From NCBI GenBank assembly GCA_977020255.1, contig CDROCS010002834.1, positions 124,001-188,000 on the forward strand: a stretch of DNA of 64,000 nt, read 5' to 3'. The stretch is from Obrimoposthia wandeli (lineage: Eukaryota). Both the position numbers and the translations under genes were made by a program. The number at the start of each line of letters is the position of its first letter. Within the stretch, counting starts at the first letter, position 1. Under the pieces are notes generated by a model that did not search any database, had not been told where the DNA came from, and was given only the letters and a program-made list of their open reading frames with translations. Of the stretch, positions 12,130 through 29,667 are shown in pieces.

Positions 12130-12383
12130 ACTGAACACCGAGATAACGCAGCCAACTTTATTCGTATCTTACGTACTAATAAAAAACGTTAAGAGACTTA
12201 AACAGGTTAGGCTGTGTTACTCATCACTCATGTAAACTTCCCTCTTCGTACCTTGCCTGAAGGTTTCTTACTCTTTACGACGACAATGTTAAAAGATCAA
12301 CAGACCCTAATACCAATTCCTTAAAATACTCTGCATACTGTAGATAGAGAATCATATATTTCAATTAGCTGTCGGTGTGATCT

Positions 12384-12947
12384 ATGAATTTAACTAACCA
12401 TTTTCTAGTCGCCATGCCTAGCATGCAAGACCCACATTTTAAACGTGGTGTAGTGTATGTTTGTGAGCACAATGAAGAAGGAGCTATGGGCTTAGTCATC
12501 AACTTGCCTATCGAAATATCCGTGGGCAATATGCTTGAACAGATTGAGGTTGAACGTGATCTTCCCGTTAATAATCCCGATAGCCTAACGCAATCAGTAT
12601 TAAACGGCGGACCTGTTTCTGAAGACCGAGGTTTTGTTTTGCATCAACCCAAAGGTCAGTTTGATTCAAGCATCAGCATTAACGATGAGCTCTCAGTAAC
12701 AACATCACAAGATATTTTACCGTTACTCGGTACTAGTGAAGCACCAGAAAAATTTATCGTCGCATTAGGTTATGCTGGATGGTCTGCAGGACAATTAGAG
12801 CAAGAACTAGCAGAAAATAGCTGGTTAACTATGGAAGCCGACGCTGAAGTGATTTTTGAAACCCCTATTAATGAGCGATGGAATACCGCTGTCGCCCGCT
12901 TAGGTATAAATCCGGCCAACCTTTCGATCGAAAAAGGACATGCATGA
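12384..12947 (+). CDS. yqgE: YqgE/AlgH (UPF0301) protein
   Basis: [26 protein letters not shown]. Confidence 0.95.
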
Positions 12948-13372
12948 GTAACTCACGCAGTGTATTAGCATTTGATTACGGCACAAAAAGTATTGGTGTT
13001 GCAATCGGTCAAGAACTAACAGGTACAGCAAACCCTCTGGCTGCACTTAAAGCAAAAGATGGCATTCCCAACTGGGATGACATTGGTAAAATTCTAAAAG
13101 AATGGCAACCCGATTTAGTTGTTGTTGGTCTTCCCCTCGATTTAGAAGGTGGAGAGCTTGAAAGCATTACACCTCGCGCTAAAAAATTCGCCAATCGTAT
13201 ACACGGTCGATTCGGTTGTGTCGTTGAATTACATGACGAGCGGTTGAGTACTGTTGAAGCAAAAGCAGAATTATTTGAACACGGTGGATACCGTGCATTA
13301 AGTAAAGGCAATATCGATTCACAATCTGCAGTCGTTATTTTAGAAAGCTGGTTTGAACGCCAATACGGTTAA
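12944..13372 (+). CDS. yqgF: Pre-16S rRNA nuclease / Holliday junction resolvase-like YqgF
   Basis: LAFDYG, VVGLP, DERLST, IDSQSA; ATGA overlap with the yqgE stop. Confidence 0.95.
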
Positions 13373-13380
13373 AAAAAACA

Positions 13381-13408
13381 TGAGTATCGAATAGCCTTTC
13401 GGTACTCA
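13381..13408 (-). terminator. Hairpin that reads as an intrinsic terminator on the minus strand
   Basis: TGAGTATCGAA-tagcct-TTCGGTACTCA, preceded on the + strand by an 8-A run (13371-13378). Confidence 0.6.
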
Positions 13409-13473
13409 CCTCTTGTTCATCATTTGTATTATACATTCACTGCATTAGCACTTTCTGCCTTCATTCCTACCTT

Positions 13474-13744
13474 GATCATCGTCGATATAAGCAGCTTTAA
13501 ATACCGTTCGTGATCACCTTGTACAGCTTTTCGTATAAAAAACAGCGCAAGCCTACCTCACTCAAAATGGATCAACAATCTGAAGATAAAGATCCAGTGT
13601 TTGTAGGGCTTGATCAGCTTGTACAGCTTTGGGACTACAGTAACCCAAAAGCTATACAAGCTGTACGCGAGGATCTTAACTTTCACTATGATCCTTTGTT
13701 TACAGGTAGTTATGATTATTAGCAGTACTTATAGCTTTAGGATC
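13474..13744. repeat. GATC-dense intergenic locus with repeated GATC-N5-GTACAGCTT motifs
   Basis: 8 GATC in 271 bp; 20-bp direct repeat TGATCA(C/G)CTTGTACAGCTTT at 13511 and 13611; inverted motif copy at 13658-13675. Confidence 0.8.
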
Positions 13745-13766
13745 ATTGTAACTCTATAACTGTCTA

Positions 13767-14870
13767 TTACAATTCAACTGTGACACCGTCTAACGCACTG
13801 CCTCCCATCATTTTTTTATTCCCGACCTTGATCATCAAACGTAGATCGTTCGCAGAATCCGCATGATGGAGTGCATCTTGCTCGGTGATCTTTCCTTCAC
13901 TAAATAATTGATAAAGTGACTGATCAAACGTCACCATGCCGGATTCACCTGACTTCGCCATTACATCTTTGATCTCATGTAATTCACCACGACGAATAAG
14001 ATCCGCCACACGTGGCGTATTCAGTAATAATTCAAATGTTGCATGCCGACCAATACCGTGTGCGTCTGGGATCAACTGCTGAGCCAAAATACATTTCAGG
14101 TTTAATGACAGATCAAATAAAAATTGATCACGGCGCTCTTTCGGGACTAAATGTAGAATTCTCTCCAATGCCTGATTCGCATTATTTGCATGTAACGTCG
14201 CCATACACAGGTGCCCTGTTTCAGCAAAGTTCATTGCGTACTCCATGGTTTCAGGCGTACGCACCTCACCGATCAAGATCATATCGGGAGCTTGGCGCAG
14301 CGAATTCTTTAGCGCGACTTCATAACTCTCTGTATCTAAACCCACTTCACGCTGTGTGACGATGCAGCGATCATGCTTATGCACAAATTCAATGGGATCT
14401 TCTACCGTTAAAATATGACCGCTACGGTTTTTATTCCGAAAGCCAGTCATTGCCGCCATCGAGGTAGACTTACCCGATCCAGTCGCGCCGACAATAAGCA
14501 CTAAACCACGCTTTGCTAACGCCATTCTTTGCATATCAATGGGTAAATTGAGATCAGTCAAATCAGGAATGTGGGTTTCAATTCGACGAATAACCATGCC
14601 CGGTAATTCACGTTGCCAAAATGCACTCACCCGAAAACGCATATCACCACGTACTAATGCAAAATTGGCTTCACGTGTCACGACAAATTCTTGGTACAAC
14701 ACCCGATCCATGGCTTCATCAAACAATGCATCAACCCCTTCACGCGTTAATTCTTCACCCAATGCGTGCAGGTGACCATCAATACGCAAAAGGCAAGGTG
14801 AATCAACGGTGATATATAAATCAGATGCTTTTTTACTGACGACTTCATTGAGAATATCTTGCAGCTTCAT
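13767..14870 (-). CDS. pilU: Type IV pilus retraction ATPase PilU
   Basis: GATGSGKST, TVEDPIEF, LRQAPD, TLHANNANQA. Confidence 0.95.
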   Translation of the reverse strand: MKLQDILNEVVSKKASDLYITVDSPCLLRIDGHLHALGEELTREGVDALFDEAMDRVLYQEFVVTREANFALVRGDMRFRVSAFWQRELPGMVIRRIETHIPDLTDLNLPIDMQRMALAKRGLVLIVGATGSGKSTSMAAMTGFRNKNRSGHILTVEDPIEFVHKHDRCIVTQREVGLDTESYEVALKNSLRQAPDMILIGEVRTPETMEYAMNFAETGHLCMATLHANNANQALERILHLVPKERRDQFLFDLSLNLKCILAQQLIPDAHGIGRHATFELLLNTPRVADLIRRGELHEIKDVMAKSGESGMVTFDQSLYQLFSEGKITEQDALHHADSANDLRLMIKVGNKKMMGGSALDGVTVEL

Positions 14871-26472: not shown

Positions 26473-26548
26473 GCCTCGATAGCTCAGTCGGTAGAGCAGA
26501 GGATTGAAAATCCTCGTGTCGGTGGTTCGATTCCGCCTCGAGGCACCA
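26473..26548 (+). tRNA. tRNA-Phe(GAA), allele A
   Basis: 76-nt cloverleaf, anticodon GAA, CCA end. Confidence 0.97.
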
Positions 26549-26607
26549 TTATTTCTTTTTGTTCATTAGAATATGAGAAATACGGTGCAAGCAACGAAAT
26601 AGATAAT

Positions 26608-26683
26608 TCCCTTTTAGTTCAGTTGGTAGAACGCCGGACTGTTAATCCGTATGTCGCTGGTTCAAGTCCAGCAAAGGGAGCCA
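26608..26683 (+). tRNA. tRNA-Asn(GTT)
   Basis: 76-nt cloverleaf, anticodon GTT, CCA end. Confidence 0.97.
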
Positions 26684-26733
26684 CATTCGTTTTTAAGTTG
26701 TAAGTTAACTTGAAGACAACAAAGATTTAGTGT

Positions 26734-26791
<58 letters not shown>

Positions 26792-26809
26792 CTCCGGTAG
26801 TCGGCACCA
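26734..26809 (+). tRNA. tRNA-Thr(TGT)
   Basis: 76-nt cloverleaf, anticodon TGT, CCA end. Confidence 0.97.
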
Positions 26810-26893
26810 TTTCTTAGCAAACGCTGTGTAGCATTAACTAACGTTATGTAACATTAGCTTTGCAAAAGTAAAAGCCTAACCGCTTTCACTTTT

Positions 26894-26969
26894 GCCTTGA
26901 TAGCTCAGTCGGTAGAGCAGAGGATTGAAAATCCTCGTGTCCCTGGTTCGATTCCGGGTCAAGGCACCA
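26894..26969 (+). tRNA. tRNA-Phe(GAA), allele B
   Basis: Acceptor GCCTTGA/TCAAGGC, T-stem CCTGG/CCGGG, anticodon GAA. Confidence 0.97.
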
Positions 26970-26975
26970 TATAAT

Positions 26976-27051
26976 TCCCTTTTAGTTCAGTTGGTAGAAC
27001 GCCGGACTGTTAATCCGTATGTCGCTGGTTCAAGTCCAGCAAAGGGAGCCA
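26976..27051 (+). tRNA. tRNA-Asn(GTT)
   Basis: Same sequence as the 26608 copy. Confidence 0.97.
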
Positions 27052-27132
27052 CTTTCTTTTCTAGGCAAAGCCTAGAGATAAAAGAGCGTTTTTAGGTTAC
27101 AAGTTAACTTGAAGACAACAAAGATTTAGTGT

Positions 27133-27190
<58 letters not shown>

Positions 27191-27208
27191 CTCCGGTAGT
27201 CGGCACCA
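27133..27208 (+). tRNA. tRNA-Thr(TGT)
   Basis: Same sequence as the 26734 copy. Confidence 0.97.
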
Positions 27209-27292
27209 TTTCTTAGCAAACGCTGTGTAGCATTAACTAACGTTGTGTAACATTAGCTTTGCAAAAGTAAAAGCCTAACCGCTTTCACTTTT

Positions 27293-27368
27293 GCCTTGAT
27301 AGCTCAGTCGGTAGAGCAGAGGATTGAAAATCCTCGTGTCGGTGGTTCGATTCCGCCTCGAGGCACCA
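27293..27368 (+). tRNA. tRNA-Phe(GAA), chimeric allele
   Basis: 5' GCCTTGA of allele B with the 3' half of allele A (U5.G68 wobble). Confidence 0.95.
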
Positions 27369-27374
27369 TATAAT

Positions 27375-27450
27375 TCCCTTTTAGTTCAGTTGGTAGAACG
27401 CCGGACTGTTAATCCGTATGTCGCTGGTTCAAGTCCAGCAAAGGGAGCCA
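27375..27450 (+). tRNA. tRNA-Asn(GTT)
   Basis: Same sequence as the 26608 copy. Confidence 0.97.
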
Positions 27451-27454
27451 CATT

Positions 27455-27486
27455 AAAAAGCCTTGTCTTCGGACGAGGCTTTTTTT
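27455..27486 (+). terminator. Terminator of tRNA operon 1
   Basis: AAAAAGCCTTGTC-ttcg-GACGAGGCTTTTTTT. Confidence 0.92.
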
Positions 27487-27541
27487 GTGCCTGTTATCCA
27501 TCTAAACAAGCATCTGCTTATTTACTTATCCAGATTGGTCT

Positions 27542-27560
27542 TATACCCAAGTCACCTCAA
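27542..27560 (+). mobile_element. Orphan terminal repeat of the MITE family found at 8495
   Basis: TATACCCAAGTCACCTCAA compared with TATACCCAAGCTACCTCAA; no partner end seen nearby. Confidence 0.55.
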
Positions 27561-27806
27561 TGTTCTGATTGCGCTCAATACCCCACTTAGAATCCCCTTC
27601 AATCTTGGCCATATAACCCCTGTAACGATCATTCAACACGATATATCAAATAAGTATGGTGTAGACCGTAGATAAGCAGAAAAAGCCATAGTCGCGCTTT
27701 AGAGGGATTAGAGCGTTAAAAACTCACACATCGTGAGTTTTCTTTACCGCATATTCGTCTACGTTTAGTAAGAGTGTTAAATTTATTACTAACTCAAGGA
27801 CGACCA

Positions 27807-28433
27807 ATGATCACCTTATATGGCTACCCTCGCTCTCGTTCATTACGTGTTTCATGGTTACTTGAAGAAAGCGGCCTTGATTGGCAATACCATTTGGTTA
27901 ATTTAATGAAAGGTGAACATAAATCGCCAAGCTACCTAGCTCTCAGCCACCAAAGTAAAGTACCTATCCTCAAAGATAATGACATTACCTTATGTGAATC
28001 ATCCGCTATTTGTTTTTATATTGCAGAAAAATACGTCCCACAATGGCTACCCAAACCCGCAAGCGCAGAATCTGCGCTTCATCACCAATGGGTCAGCTTT
28101 ATTATTTCAGAGTTAGAACAACCCTTGTGGAGCATGGGTAAACATAAATTTGCCCTACCCGAACAGATTCGATTACCAGAAATGCTTGCCGTTGCCAGCT
28201 GGGAATTTAAGAAAGCCGCCCAAACAGCCGAAGCTTGGCTGCCAGATTCTGATTATGTCATAGGGCGTTCACCCAGCATTGCTGACATTCTTCTCGCCCA
28301 CACCCTCAACTGGGCAGTCAAGTTTGAGCAAAAATTACCCACTAAACTCGAAAAATACCGTCAAAAGCTAAACCAGCGCCCGGCATTAATACGTGCATTG
28401 AGCAAAGAACAACAAGCTTTAGCTGATCTTTAA
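27807..28433 (+). CDS. Glutathione S-transferase family protein
   Basis: MITLYGYPRSRSLRV, KVPIL, LCESSAIC, SIADI GST motifs; start at ATG 27807. Confidence 0.92.
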   Translation: MITLYGYPRSRSLRVSWLLEESGLDWQYHLVNLMKGEHKSPSYLALSHQSKVPILKDNDITLCESSAICFYIAEKYVPQWLPKPASAESALHHQWVSFIISELEQPLWSMGKHKFALPEQIRLPEMLAVASWEFKKAAQTAEAWLPDSDYVIGRSPSIADILLAHTLNWAVKFEQKLPTKLEKYRQKLNQRPALIRALSKEQQALADL

Positions 28434-28528
28434 AAAGTAATTTTCCGGTATTAATGAGCTTAATGAGTTTAAAATACCACCAATCAGTGCAAAAAAACCA
28501 AAGTTAAACATTTTTCGCAAAAAAACCA

Positions 28529-28563
28529 TTGACGAAACAGCCGAAAACCTTTTTAATGCGCTC
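28529..28563 (+). promoter_or_regulatory. Stable-RNA sigma70 promoter of tRNA operon 2
   Basis: TTGACG-17bp-TTTAAT-GCGCTC, A-tract upstream. Confidence 0.85.
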
Positions 28564-28567
28564 CGTT

Positions 28568-28643
28568 GCCTCGATAGCTCAGTCGGTAGAGCAGAGGATT
28601 GAAAATCCTCGTGTCGGTGGTTCGATTCCGCCTCGAGGCACCA
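28568..28643 (+). tRNA. tRNA-Phe(GAA), allele A
   Basis: Same sequence as the 26473 copy. Confidence 0.97.
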
Positions 28644-28702
28644 TTATTTCTTTTTGTTCATTAGAATATGAGAAATACGGTGCAAGCAACGAAATAGATA
28701 AT

Positions 28703-28778
28703 TCCCTTTTAGTTCAGTTGGTAGAACGCCGGACTGTTAATCCGTATGTCGCTGGTTCAAGTCCAGCAAAGGGAGCCA
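28703..28778 (+). tRNA. tRNA-Asn(GTT)
   Basis: Cloverleaf, anticodon GTT, CCA end. Confidence 0.97.
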
Positions 28779-28828
28779 AATTCGTTTTTAAGTTGTAAGT
28801 TAACTTGAAGACAACAAAGATTTAGTGT

Positions 28829-28886
<58 letters not shown>

Positions 28887-28904
28887 CTCCGGTAGTCGGC
28901 ACCA
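28829..28904 (+). tRNA. tRNA-Thr(TGT)
   Basis: Cloverleaf, anticodon TGT, CCA end. Confidence 0.97.
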
Positions 28905-28988
28905 TTTCTTAGCAAATGCTGTGTAGCATTAACTAACGTTGTGTAACATTAGCTTTGCAAAAGTAAAAGCCTAACCGCTTTCACTTTT

Positions 28989-29064
28989 GCCTTGATAGCT
29001 CAGTCGGTAGAGCAGAGGATTGAAAATCCTCGTGTCGGTGGTTCGATTCCGCCTCGAGGCACCA
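28989..29064 (+). tRNA. tRNA-Phe(GAA), chimeric allele
   Basis: GCCTTGA...TCGAGGC. Confidence 0.95.
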
Positions 29065-29070
29065 TATAAT

Positions 29071-29146
29071 TCCCTTTTAGTTCAGTTGGTAGAACGCCGG
29101 ACTGTTAATCCGTATGTCGCTGGTTCAAGTCCAGCAAAGGGAGCCA
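29071..29146 (+). tRNA. tRNA-Asn(GTT)
   Basis: Cloverleaf, anticodon GTT, CCA end. Confidence 0.97.
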
Positions 29147-29227
29147 CTTTCTTTTCTAGGCAAAGCCTAGAGATAAAAGAGCGTTTTTAGGTTACAAGTT
29201 AACTTGAAGACAACAAAGATTTAGTGT

Positions 29228-29285
<58 letters not shown>

Positions 29286-29303
29286 CTCCGGTAGTCGGCA
29301 CCA
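29228..29303 (+). tRNA. tRNA-Thr(TGT)
   Basis: Cloverleaf, anticodon TGT, CCA end. Confidence 0.97.
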
Positions 29304-29387
29304 TTTCTTAGCAAACGCTGTGTAGCATTAACTAACGTTGTGTAACATTAGCTTTGCAAAAGTAAAAGCCTAACCGCTTTCACTTTT

Positions 29388-29463
29388 GCCTTGATAGCTC
29401 AGTCGGTAGAGCAGAGGATTGAAAATCCTCGTGTCGGTGGTTCGATTCCGCCTCGAGGCACCA
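29388..29463 (+). tRNA. tRNA-Phe(GAA), chimeric allele
   Basis: GCCTTGA...TCGAGGC. Confidence 0.95.
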
Positions 29464-29469
29464 TATAAT

Positions 29470-29545
29470 TCCCTTTTAGTTCAGTTGGTAGAACGCCGGA
29501 CTGTTAATCCGTATGTCGCTGGTTCAAGTCCAGCAAAGGGAGCCA
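29470..29545 (+). tRNA. tRNA-Asn(GTT)
   Basis: Cloverleaf, anticodon GTT, CCA end. Confidence 0.97.
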
Positions 29546-29591
29546 AACAACTTTAAGTTGAGAAATCAGCTTATAGTACAAAATTTAGTGT

Positions 29592-29649
<58 letters not shown>

Positions 29650-29667
29650 CTCCGGTAGTCGGCACCA
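29592..29667 (+). tRNA. tRNA-Thr(TGT)
   Basis: Cloverleaf, anticodon TGT, CCA end. Confidence 0.97.

Follow-up and report, generated by a model that had tools for sequence, protein, structure and literature searches.

Eight GATC sites lie within 271 bp of the spacer between the convergent genes ruvX (yqgF) and pilU, and the question that this locus raises is what kind of element they belong to. The first-pass annotation proposed a methylation-sensitive nucleoprotein site, such as a SeqA/IHF platform, an RctB titration or replication-coordination site, or an epigenetic switch. By comparing the locus with its orthologs and paralogs, we found in the spacer a non-coding element made of two palindromic parts, whose conservation extends across Photobacterium. 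Judging from these sequence comparisons, the element is most likely a Dam-methylation-sensitive protein-binding DNA site, and not a crtS/RctB replication site.

Genomic context of the ruvX-pilU spacer

The window, that is, the whole stretch of 64,000 nucleotides that was analyzed, is part of a Photobacterium contig (C2834, at least 188 kb) within an assembly of 1.35 Gb and 6912 contigs. Since the genes of this contig are those of Photobacterium and the assembly is eukaryotic, the contig belongs to a bacterial associate or a contaminant. PilU from P. profundum, P. indicum, and P. frigidiphilum shares 97% identity with the protein encoded here, and among ruvX-pilU spacers that of P. frigidiphilum comes closest in sequence. 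The GC content is 43.1% in the window and 37.8% in the spacer. The convergent orientation of the flanking genes, already noted in the first-pass annotation, agrees with the list of open reading frames and with Pfam searches (Table 1). The true start of ruvX is probably about 24 codons inside the annotated ORF.

Table 1. Features of the ruvX-pilU locus in window coordinates
Feature	Positions	Strand	Description and support
ruvX (yqgF) ORF, left flank	12878-13372	+	Pfam RuvX, E=1.7e-40 (residues 28-160); ORF list
Hairpin 13381-13408 followed by U8	13372-13412	-	-12.5 kcal/mol, z=-3.35, then UGUUUUUUUU
GATC cluster, 8 sites	13474-13744		Starts at 13474, 13512, 13570, 13591, 13612, 13672, 13690, 13741
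M1	13511-13556		TGATCACCTT-GTACAGCTTTT (13521-13531), degenerate right arm CAGCGCAAGCC; alignments
Linker	13557-13610		Fixed length, free sequence, GATCs at 13570 and 13591; identity 0.34 versus 0.83 in the core
51-codon ORF, not a gene	13567-13722	+	Within the 13510-13722 ORF; no conserved start
M2	13611-13675		58-bp near-perfect palindrome; R1 70.6 bits, E=1.9e-17
Module 3	13730-13766		Weak inverted repeat TATAGCTTTAGGATCAT..CTATAAC beside the pilU stop; R1 E=0.054, weak
pilU, right flank, convergent with ruvX	13767-14870	-	Pfam T2SSE, E=7e-42

The only candidate for a small protein in the spacer, a 51-codon ORF, was rejected: its start is not conserved, and in other species in-frame stops occur a few codons from the conserved core. 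No Pfam match was obtained for this ORF, and the longest near-open run in any of the six frames of the orthologous spacers spans 18 codons, which are the conserved core itself.

Two other parts of the window deserve mention. The gshB/yqgE spacer corresponds to positions 12130-12383; its ortholog in P. profundum SS9 was described as a putative sRNA of 281 nt (PBPRA3138a) flagged as a repeated region (PMC3505737, Table S8), and the yqgE-ruvX operon of SS9 has a 5'UTR of 165 nt (PMC3505737). Further downstream, 17 tRNA genes on the plus strand (26473-29664) form two near-identical tandem arrays (26.47-27.45 kb and 28.57-29.66 kb).

A GATC cluster in the spacer

The first-pass annotation had listed eight GATC sites where roughly one would be expected. 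All eight are present where it had placed them, against 1.16 expected from the window mean of 4.27 GATC per kb, and this count is the maximum among all 271-bp windows of the 64 kb. The Poisson probability of the cluster is 3e-5 per window, or about 0.007 when corrected for approximately 236 windows, and in 5000 first-order Markov simulations of the spacer the number of GATC sites averaged 0.7 and never exceeded five. The accompanying sequence features were recovered as well, including the two successive 21-bp gaps (13570, 13591, 13612), the 20-bp direct repeat TGATCA(C/G)CTTGTACAGCTTT occurring 100 bp apart at 13511 and 13611, the inverted GATC-N5-GTACAGCTT at 13675-13658, and the TATAGCTTT copies at 13648-13656 (inverted) and 13730-13738.

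A bipartite palindromic element conserved across Photobacterium

We stacked 43 orthologous spacers on their conserved core, which gave an almost gap-free alignment. The element consists of two palindromic modules, M1 and M2, separated by a linker. The consensus of M1 is GTACAGCTTT-N19-AAAGCTG, and its right arm takes the form CAGC..AAAGCTG(A)C in other species. The consensus of M2 is GWWCAGCTT-GTACAGCTTTTGGA-N8-AACCCAAAAGCT, followed in many species by N4-AAGCTGWWC, and the module is thus a palindrome of up to 58 bp made of four half-sites. In the strain analyzed here, the left half-sites of M2 are GATCAGCTT and GTACAGCTTTGGG, the loop occupies 13634-13643, and the right half-sites CCCAAAAGCT and AAGCTGTAC are followed by the GATC at 13672. 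M1 of this strain matches the M2 model with E=3.5e-4. The hairpin energy of M2 is -23.9 kcal/mol on the plus strand and -29.1 kcal/mol on the minus strand (z of -4.6 and -5.7, respectively), and M1 of the same strain forms only a weak hairpin.

The core of M2 is nearly invariant among the 43 species. Its mean pairwise identity exceeds that of pilU third codon positions (0.52; first and second positions, 0.90), and the M2 core is therefore strongly constrained. In contrast, the linker appears from these comparisons to be constrained only in its length and its GATC content. In 37 of the 43 species M2 is spaced 100 bp from M1, and in another five 99-101 bp, while in the remaining one M1 could not be located. 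Conservation in other Photobacterium had been named in the first-pass annotation as a check on its proposal, and it holds at the level of the modules, which are kept across the orthologous spacers. The repeat pair flanked by TGATCA at a distance of 100 bp fared less well: it occurs in the profundum clade, but elsewhere M1 usually lacks an adjacent GATC.

At one position of the half-site, GATC and GTAC replace each other between species and between loci. The half-site GATCAGCTT, which includes GATC, alternates with GTACAGCTT.

Maintenance of GATC density across the genus

All 40 Photobacterium ruvX-pilU spacers in which GATC sites were counted (262-525 bp in length) carry between three and nine of them, corresponding to densities of 10-30 per kb versus 6-11 per kb in their flanks. 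In Vibrio hannami and Vibrio sp. HN007 the ruvX-pilU spacer is 23 bp long and has zero GATC. Individual sites turn over between the Photobacterium species, and the density at ruvX-pilU is maintained. The commonest gap between adjacent sites in the 40 spacers is 21 bp (35 cases), which is the GATC spacing preferred by SeqA, followed by gaps of 10 bp (12 cases) and 16 bp (10 cases). Relative to the first base of CAGCTTGTACAGC, the recurrent positions are -75, -24, -3, +18, +48, and +57.

The GATC positions show a periodicity of 10-10.5 bp, with Rayleigh R=0.52-0.54 in a sample of 31 representatives of less than 85% mutual identity; these share ancestry, and P values are uncorrected for phylogeny. 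The mean phase lies within 1 bp of the half-site GATC (-3), and when the two motif-borne GATCs are set aside p still amounts to 1e-4 to 1e-6 (likewise uncorrected). Because the periodicity also peaks at 12 bp and because of the shared ancestry, we treat the phasing as suggestive. With the same caveats of a 12-bp alias and common descent, the spacers show the arrangement of SeqA-type clusters, with two or more GATCs on one face of the helix at a separation of up to about 31 bp.

Paralogs of the element in the same genomes

We searched for further copies with a 20-mer of M2 and then with the covariance model R1 in a sample of 151 Vibrionaceae genomes. Strong R1 matches (E below 1e-11) were identified in 46 of them, and in six of these 46 the ruvX-pilU copy is apparently the sole strong match. 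The number of R1 matches ranges from one to eight per genome, with both strands of the palindrome counted. Genomes of the damselae/leiognathi-like type have the ruvX-pilU copy only, and others have at least three loci. Besides ruvX-pilU (locus A), copies lie between a radical-SAM gene and rimK (locus B; contig C3739 in the genome of our strain) and next to a divergently oriented gene for a SorC-family regulator (locus C; PBPRA0714 in SS9). The SorC-family gene of our strain is located on contig C122 and shows 98% identity. Additional copies, some of them in tandem, were found near a Fur-family gene.

The paralogs keep both modules at a spacing of either 99-103 or 108-112 bp, two classes that differ by one helical turn. 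They differ from the ruvX-pilU copy in their GATC content, which averages 0.7 versus 3.3 sites per 160 bp over the element and 0.08 versus 1.4 sites per 53 bp in the linker, and their linkers are AT-rich. Since M1 and M2 are retained without the GATC load, the modules are the basic unit and the load is specific to ruvX-pilU. The first-pass annotation did not take these GATC-poor paralogs into account.

Weaker resemblances were seen outside this family. In other Vibrionaceae, related hairpins of the form GAGCTTTTGGA-N-TCCAAAAGCTC directly follow stop codons, carry T-runs, and resemble ordinary terminators. One genome of 3.5 Mb (G010) has seven weak matches of the form GTACAGCTTTTT-AGCTTTTGGATC. 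Whether these sequences are homologous to the Photobacterium element is uncertain.

Terminators, transcription, and RNA structure

The hairpin beside ruvX ends in the U8 tract when read on the minus strand and in CCTCTTGTTC when read on the plus strand. As an intrinsic terminator it is predicted to work well for leftward transcripts but poorly for ruvX. At the other end of the spacer, Module 3 in most other species is a strong bidirectional terminator with an A-run and a T-run and with GGATCAT in its loop. In our strain it folds with -4.9 kcal/mol only (z=0.13), so pilU lacks a good terminator of its own here. With no convincing pilU terminator and the U8 tract only at the far end of the spacer, pilU transcripts may therefore run for about 390 nt through the element.

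An RNA-level role, which we regard as somewhat unlikely, would take one of two forms: an sRNA family with a functional M2 hairpin, or a long pilU 3'UTR, possibly a 3'UTR-derived sRNA, that extends to the U8 terminator. The strong folding of M2 on both strands and the read-through from pilU just described are consistent with such a role, as is the occurrence of paralogs in unrelated intergenic contexts, which is also seen for sRNA paralogs. However, pilU is cut off from the element by a strong terminator in most of the species. The alignment likewise argues against a conserved RNA structure. RNAalifold gave no consensus structure for the spacers (-0.43 kcal/mol), and the covariation score of 0.085 was not above controls (0.078 in shuffles), with fewer pairs changed on both sides than in the shuffles. 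In each palindrome both arms are kept at the level of sequence; the proportion of paired cells in the hairpins is 72.9% versus 72.2% after shuffling, and the departures are broken pairs rather than compensated ones. Departures of the G-U and A-C types show no consistent strand bias. A covariation-supported structure of the kind that marks an sRNA was not found in these spacers, and a known RNA family was rejected because Rfam returned only chance miRNA-like matches on the hairpin. In addition, the spacing of 100 or 110 bp is quantized in steps of 10 bp, which is a property of the double helix and fits protein contacts on one face of the DNA, not an RNA.

Expression data were available from the tables for SS9 and from metatranscriptome contigs, none of them stranded or 5'-end specific for our strain. 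RNA-seq of SS9 revealed 460 putative sRNAs (PMC3505737), and none of them lies at locus A, between PBPRA3140 (ruvX) and PBPRA3141 (pilU), or at locus B. In four metatranscriptomes examined as contigs, ruvX and pilU are covered, but the spacer is represented by one contig of 151 nt and depth 2 (13476-13626).

The picture is different at locus C. In SS9, a high-coverage leader RNA of 228 nt, PBPRA0713a, constitutes the 5'UTR of PBPRA0714, the gene for the SorC-family regulator, and starts at 787,376-380 (PMC3505737, Table S8 and UTR table). Model R1 places M2 of this locus at 787,333-787,403 on the strand opposite to PBPRA0713a. The transcript thus starts inside M2, 7 nt downstream of the sequence TTGATA-17-TTCAAT, whose -10 hexamer is the M2 loop. 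On the same strand, the M2 loops of many paralogs read TATAAT, TATTAT, CATAAT, or TATAGT, and the loop at ruvX-pilU reads only TACTGT. The leader RNA and the AT-rich, -10-like hexamers beside M2 in the paralogs could be taken as support for an RNA element. Scanning of both strands with a sigma-70 matrix identified no position-conserved promoter overall and none at ruvX-pilU, and spot promoter scans of paralogs were uninformative.

A helically phased operator pair as the preferred reading

The reading that we tentatively prefer, at somewhat less than an even chance, is a helically phased pair of operators around a promoter in M2 that would be sensitive to Dam and SeqA at ruvX-pilU. According to this model, the ruvX-pilU copy would be the oldest and best conserved member of a family of bipartite DNA elements specific to Photobacterium. 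The M1 and M2 palindromes, built from the half-site G(A/T)(T/A)CAGCTT(TTGG) and placed a whole number of helical turns apart, may act as operators for a putative multimeric DNA-binding protein that bridges both. The protein binding and looping that we infer here are consistent with the geometry, two palindromes separated by helical turns at ruvX-pilU as well as in the paralogs. The pair would enclose a promoter with its -10 element in the M2 loop, firing from M2 toward M1, i.e. leftward on the minus strand. The putative transcript would end at the U8 terminator beside ruvX, and the terminator at 13372-13408 does face this direction.

At ruvX-pilU only, the outer half-sites carry GATC instead of GTAC, and the linker is stocked with GATCs mostly 21 bp apart. 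Since both half-sites and linker carry GATC, occupancy of the operators would be expected to respond to Dam methylation, and also to hemimethylation or SeqA binding once the replication fork has passed. The ruvX-pilU copy may then represent a form of the module that is under epigenetic control or coupled to replication. A more elaborate scheme, which we consider distinctly unlikely, is a new type of replication-coupled epigenetic switch in which a looped nucleoprotein complex on M1 and M2 would compete with Dam and SeqA for helically phased GATCs. Each passing fork would then transiently open or close the M2 promoter and give rise to a cell-cycle pulse of a minus-strand RNA of about 250 nt, and the GATC-free paralogs would be constitutive.

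The SorC-family regulator is an attractive candidate for the cognate binder, because its gene abuts one of the paralogs in about 40 genomes. In 40 genomes the identity of this protein amounts to 88-100%, and each of the 40 has strong matches to the element. Nevertheless, its role at ruvX-pilU is doubtful. Six genomes keep the ruvX-pilU element and have only a Vibrio-type ortholog of the regulator (about 62% identity). Upstream of that ortholog, in the one such genome that was read (G013) and in Vibrio species, there is a different repeat, GAACAWWTGTTC, which argues against binding of the SorC-family protein at ruvX-pilU. Several palindrome copies of the GAACAWWTGTTC type are present upstream of the SorC-family ortholog in Vibrio and its allies, and this palindrome is probably the regulator's own operator. 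In a large Photobacterium clade, the M1/M2 element occupies the region upstream of the SorC-family gene instead of GAACAWWTGTTC.

A possible origin from a mobile element

It is also conceivable, if quite improbable, that the locus is a domesticated or relic low-copy mobile element of the MITE type, which measures about 150 bp, has the termini TG...CA (TGTACAGC...GCTGTACA), and spread to a few sites in one Photobacterium clade. The GATC sites would then be left over from a Dam-controlled binding of transposase, which is known from the ends of IS10 and IS50. In line with this, the element is bounded on either side by inverted copies of GTACAGCTT, and the low and variable number of copies per genome, the restriction of damselae/leiognathi-like genomes to a single locus, and the unrelated contexts of the copies would suit a sparse mobile family. 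On the other hand, each locus is syntenic across many species, and outside the modules the copies of any one genome have diverged strongly, which leaves no room for recent mobility. Moreover, purifying selection on the core is as strong as on coding sequence, and a relic would not be expected to keep an exact spacing or to renew its GATC sites.

Replication sites and other binding sites

A role in replication coordination was among the suggestions of the first-pass annotation. The locus would be a second crtS-like or RctB-titrating site, or a SeqA sequestration platform involved in chromosome dynamics and not in the control of a local promoter. Several observations are compatible with it: the GATC cluster with its 21-bp pairs, the three TGATCA hexamers in this strain, and a conserved position on Chr1, about 0.44-0.6 Mb from the start or end of the record in complete genomes. 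In V. cholerae, RctB peaks on Chr1 occur at TGATCA-type sites (PMC11711613).

To recognize crtS, we used its conserved core CAGnATATGTAACTnATGCTTTCGG with at most three mismatches, a pattern that is unique in the genome (Kemter et al., PMC5854411). The window contains no match, and the single good match in the genome of our strain, with one mismatch, is on contig C122. Four Photobacterium genomes, including SS9 and P. frigidiphilum, have one perfect match each, never at ruvX-pilU; on chromosome 1 of SS9, for example, the match is at 850,077 and the ruvX-pilU locus at 3,577,405. The canonical crtS therefore exists elsewhere, once per genome. On contig C122 of our strain, crtS and the SorC-family gene are about 72 kb apart.

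For RctB, we compared the spacer with three Photobacterium ori2 regions that were found through the Pfam domain RctB_central. These contain six iterons of the form GAAnnnA-TGATCA at an exact spacing of 23 bp, and GTACAGCTT is absent from them. They also have further isolated TGATCA and CCGTAA motifs (39-mer type), and the iterons lie between rctB and a 409-aa ORF. The TGATCA sites of the spacer are 38 and 100 bp apart and have other flanks, and just one of them is kept throughout the genus, so that nothing but the hexamer is shared with an iteron array. An RctB 39-mer was rejected, since neither TTACGG nor CCGTAA (motif according to PMC11711613) occurs in the spacer. Furthermore, the modules recur in GATC-poor paralogs, and hence are not themselves specific for Dam or RctB. 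Chr2 of V. cholerae was hardly affected by extra RctB sites on Chr1 (PMC11711613). With the crtS pattern, the iteron flanks, the 23-bp spacing, and the TTACGG motif all missing, we abandon the RctB titration proposal and consider a replication-coordination site very improbable.

Three other candidates were discarded. The IHF-like 13-mer GATCAACAATCTG pointed out previously is indeed present at 13570, but it does not conform to the strict IHF consensus, and the only other strain that has it is the nearest relative (L042). A DnaA site is excluded in agreement with the first-pass annotation: the spacer has no box in strict form, none with fewer than two mismatches, and none that is conserved. A phase switch of the pap type with Dam and Lrp does not agree with the convergent flanking genes or with the presence of an M1-adjacent GATC in few species only. 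What survives of the original proposal is its general kind: given the maintained density, the 21-bp gaps, and the GATC within the half-site, the locus is still best read as a methylation-sensitive nucleoprotein site, while the RctB, crtS, and IHF versions fail.

Comparison with known systems

As a helically phased operator pair, the element resembles the looped repression systems lac O1/O3, gal OE/OI, and deo. In each case two palindromes flank or overlap a promoter, which is putative at ruvX-pilU, their separation amounts to whole turns (100 or about 110 bp here), and the sequence between them is free. In contrast to these systems, no regulated gene lies downstream at ruvX-pilU, just a short stretch to the terminator. 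To our knowledge, there is no operator that matches the half-site GWWCAGCTT(TTGG), and a literature search for the motif returned no description of it, only unrelated primers. For annotation, model R1 defines a recognizable family of elements in several seemingly "empty" intergenic regions of Photobacterium.

The crtS/RctB sites are similar in being intergenic sites on Chr1 that contain GATC and are conserved within a Vibrionaceae lineage. However, the ruvX-pilU locus does not fit the crtS core pattern, the true crtS is elsewhere, and the element differs from the iterons and 39-mers that Photobacterium has at ori2. A tempting misassignment of this locus to crtS/RctB is thereby removed.

The SeqA clusters at oriC and the dnaA promoter share with the spacer GATC sites no more than 31 bp apart, mainly at 21 and 10 bp, on one helical face. 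The ruvX-pilU element differs from them in having no DnaA boxes or AT-rich unwinding element, in lying far from both ori1 and ori2, and in being organized around palindromes of which GATC-free versions occur at other loci.

With pap, agn43/OxyR, and IS10 the element has in common that GATC sites fall inside putative protein half-sites and that their density is kept by selection. In pap, GATC-prox and GATC-dist are 102 bp apart and act together with Lrp, and the GATC pair about 100 bp apart in our strain resembles this arrangement. At ruvX-pilU, though, there is no divergent pair of the papI/papBA type and no fimbrial operon, and the 100-bp GATC pair is not genus-wide. Compared with pap, agn43, and IS10, the spacer also has many more GATC sites, and these turn over. 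If the preferred reading is correct, the element would be a genus-wide cis-element in which Dam sites are selectively kept while their positions drift, with the GATC-less paralogs as built-in controls. It would then provide, beyond pap, agn43, and oriC, a natural system for the action of adenine methylation and SeqA on a looped repressor in a two-chromosome bacterium.
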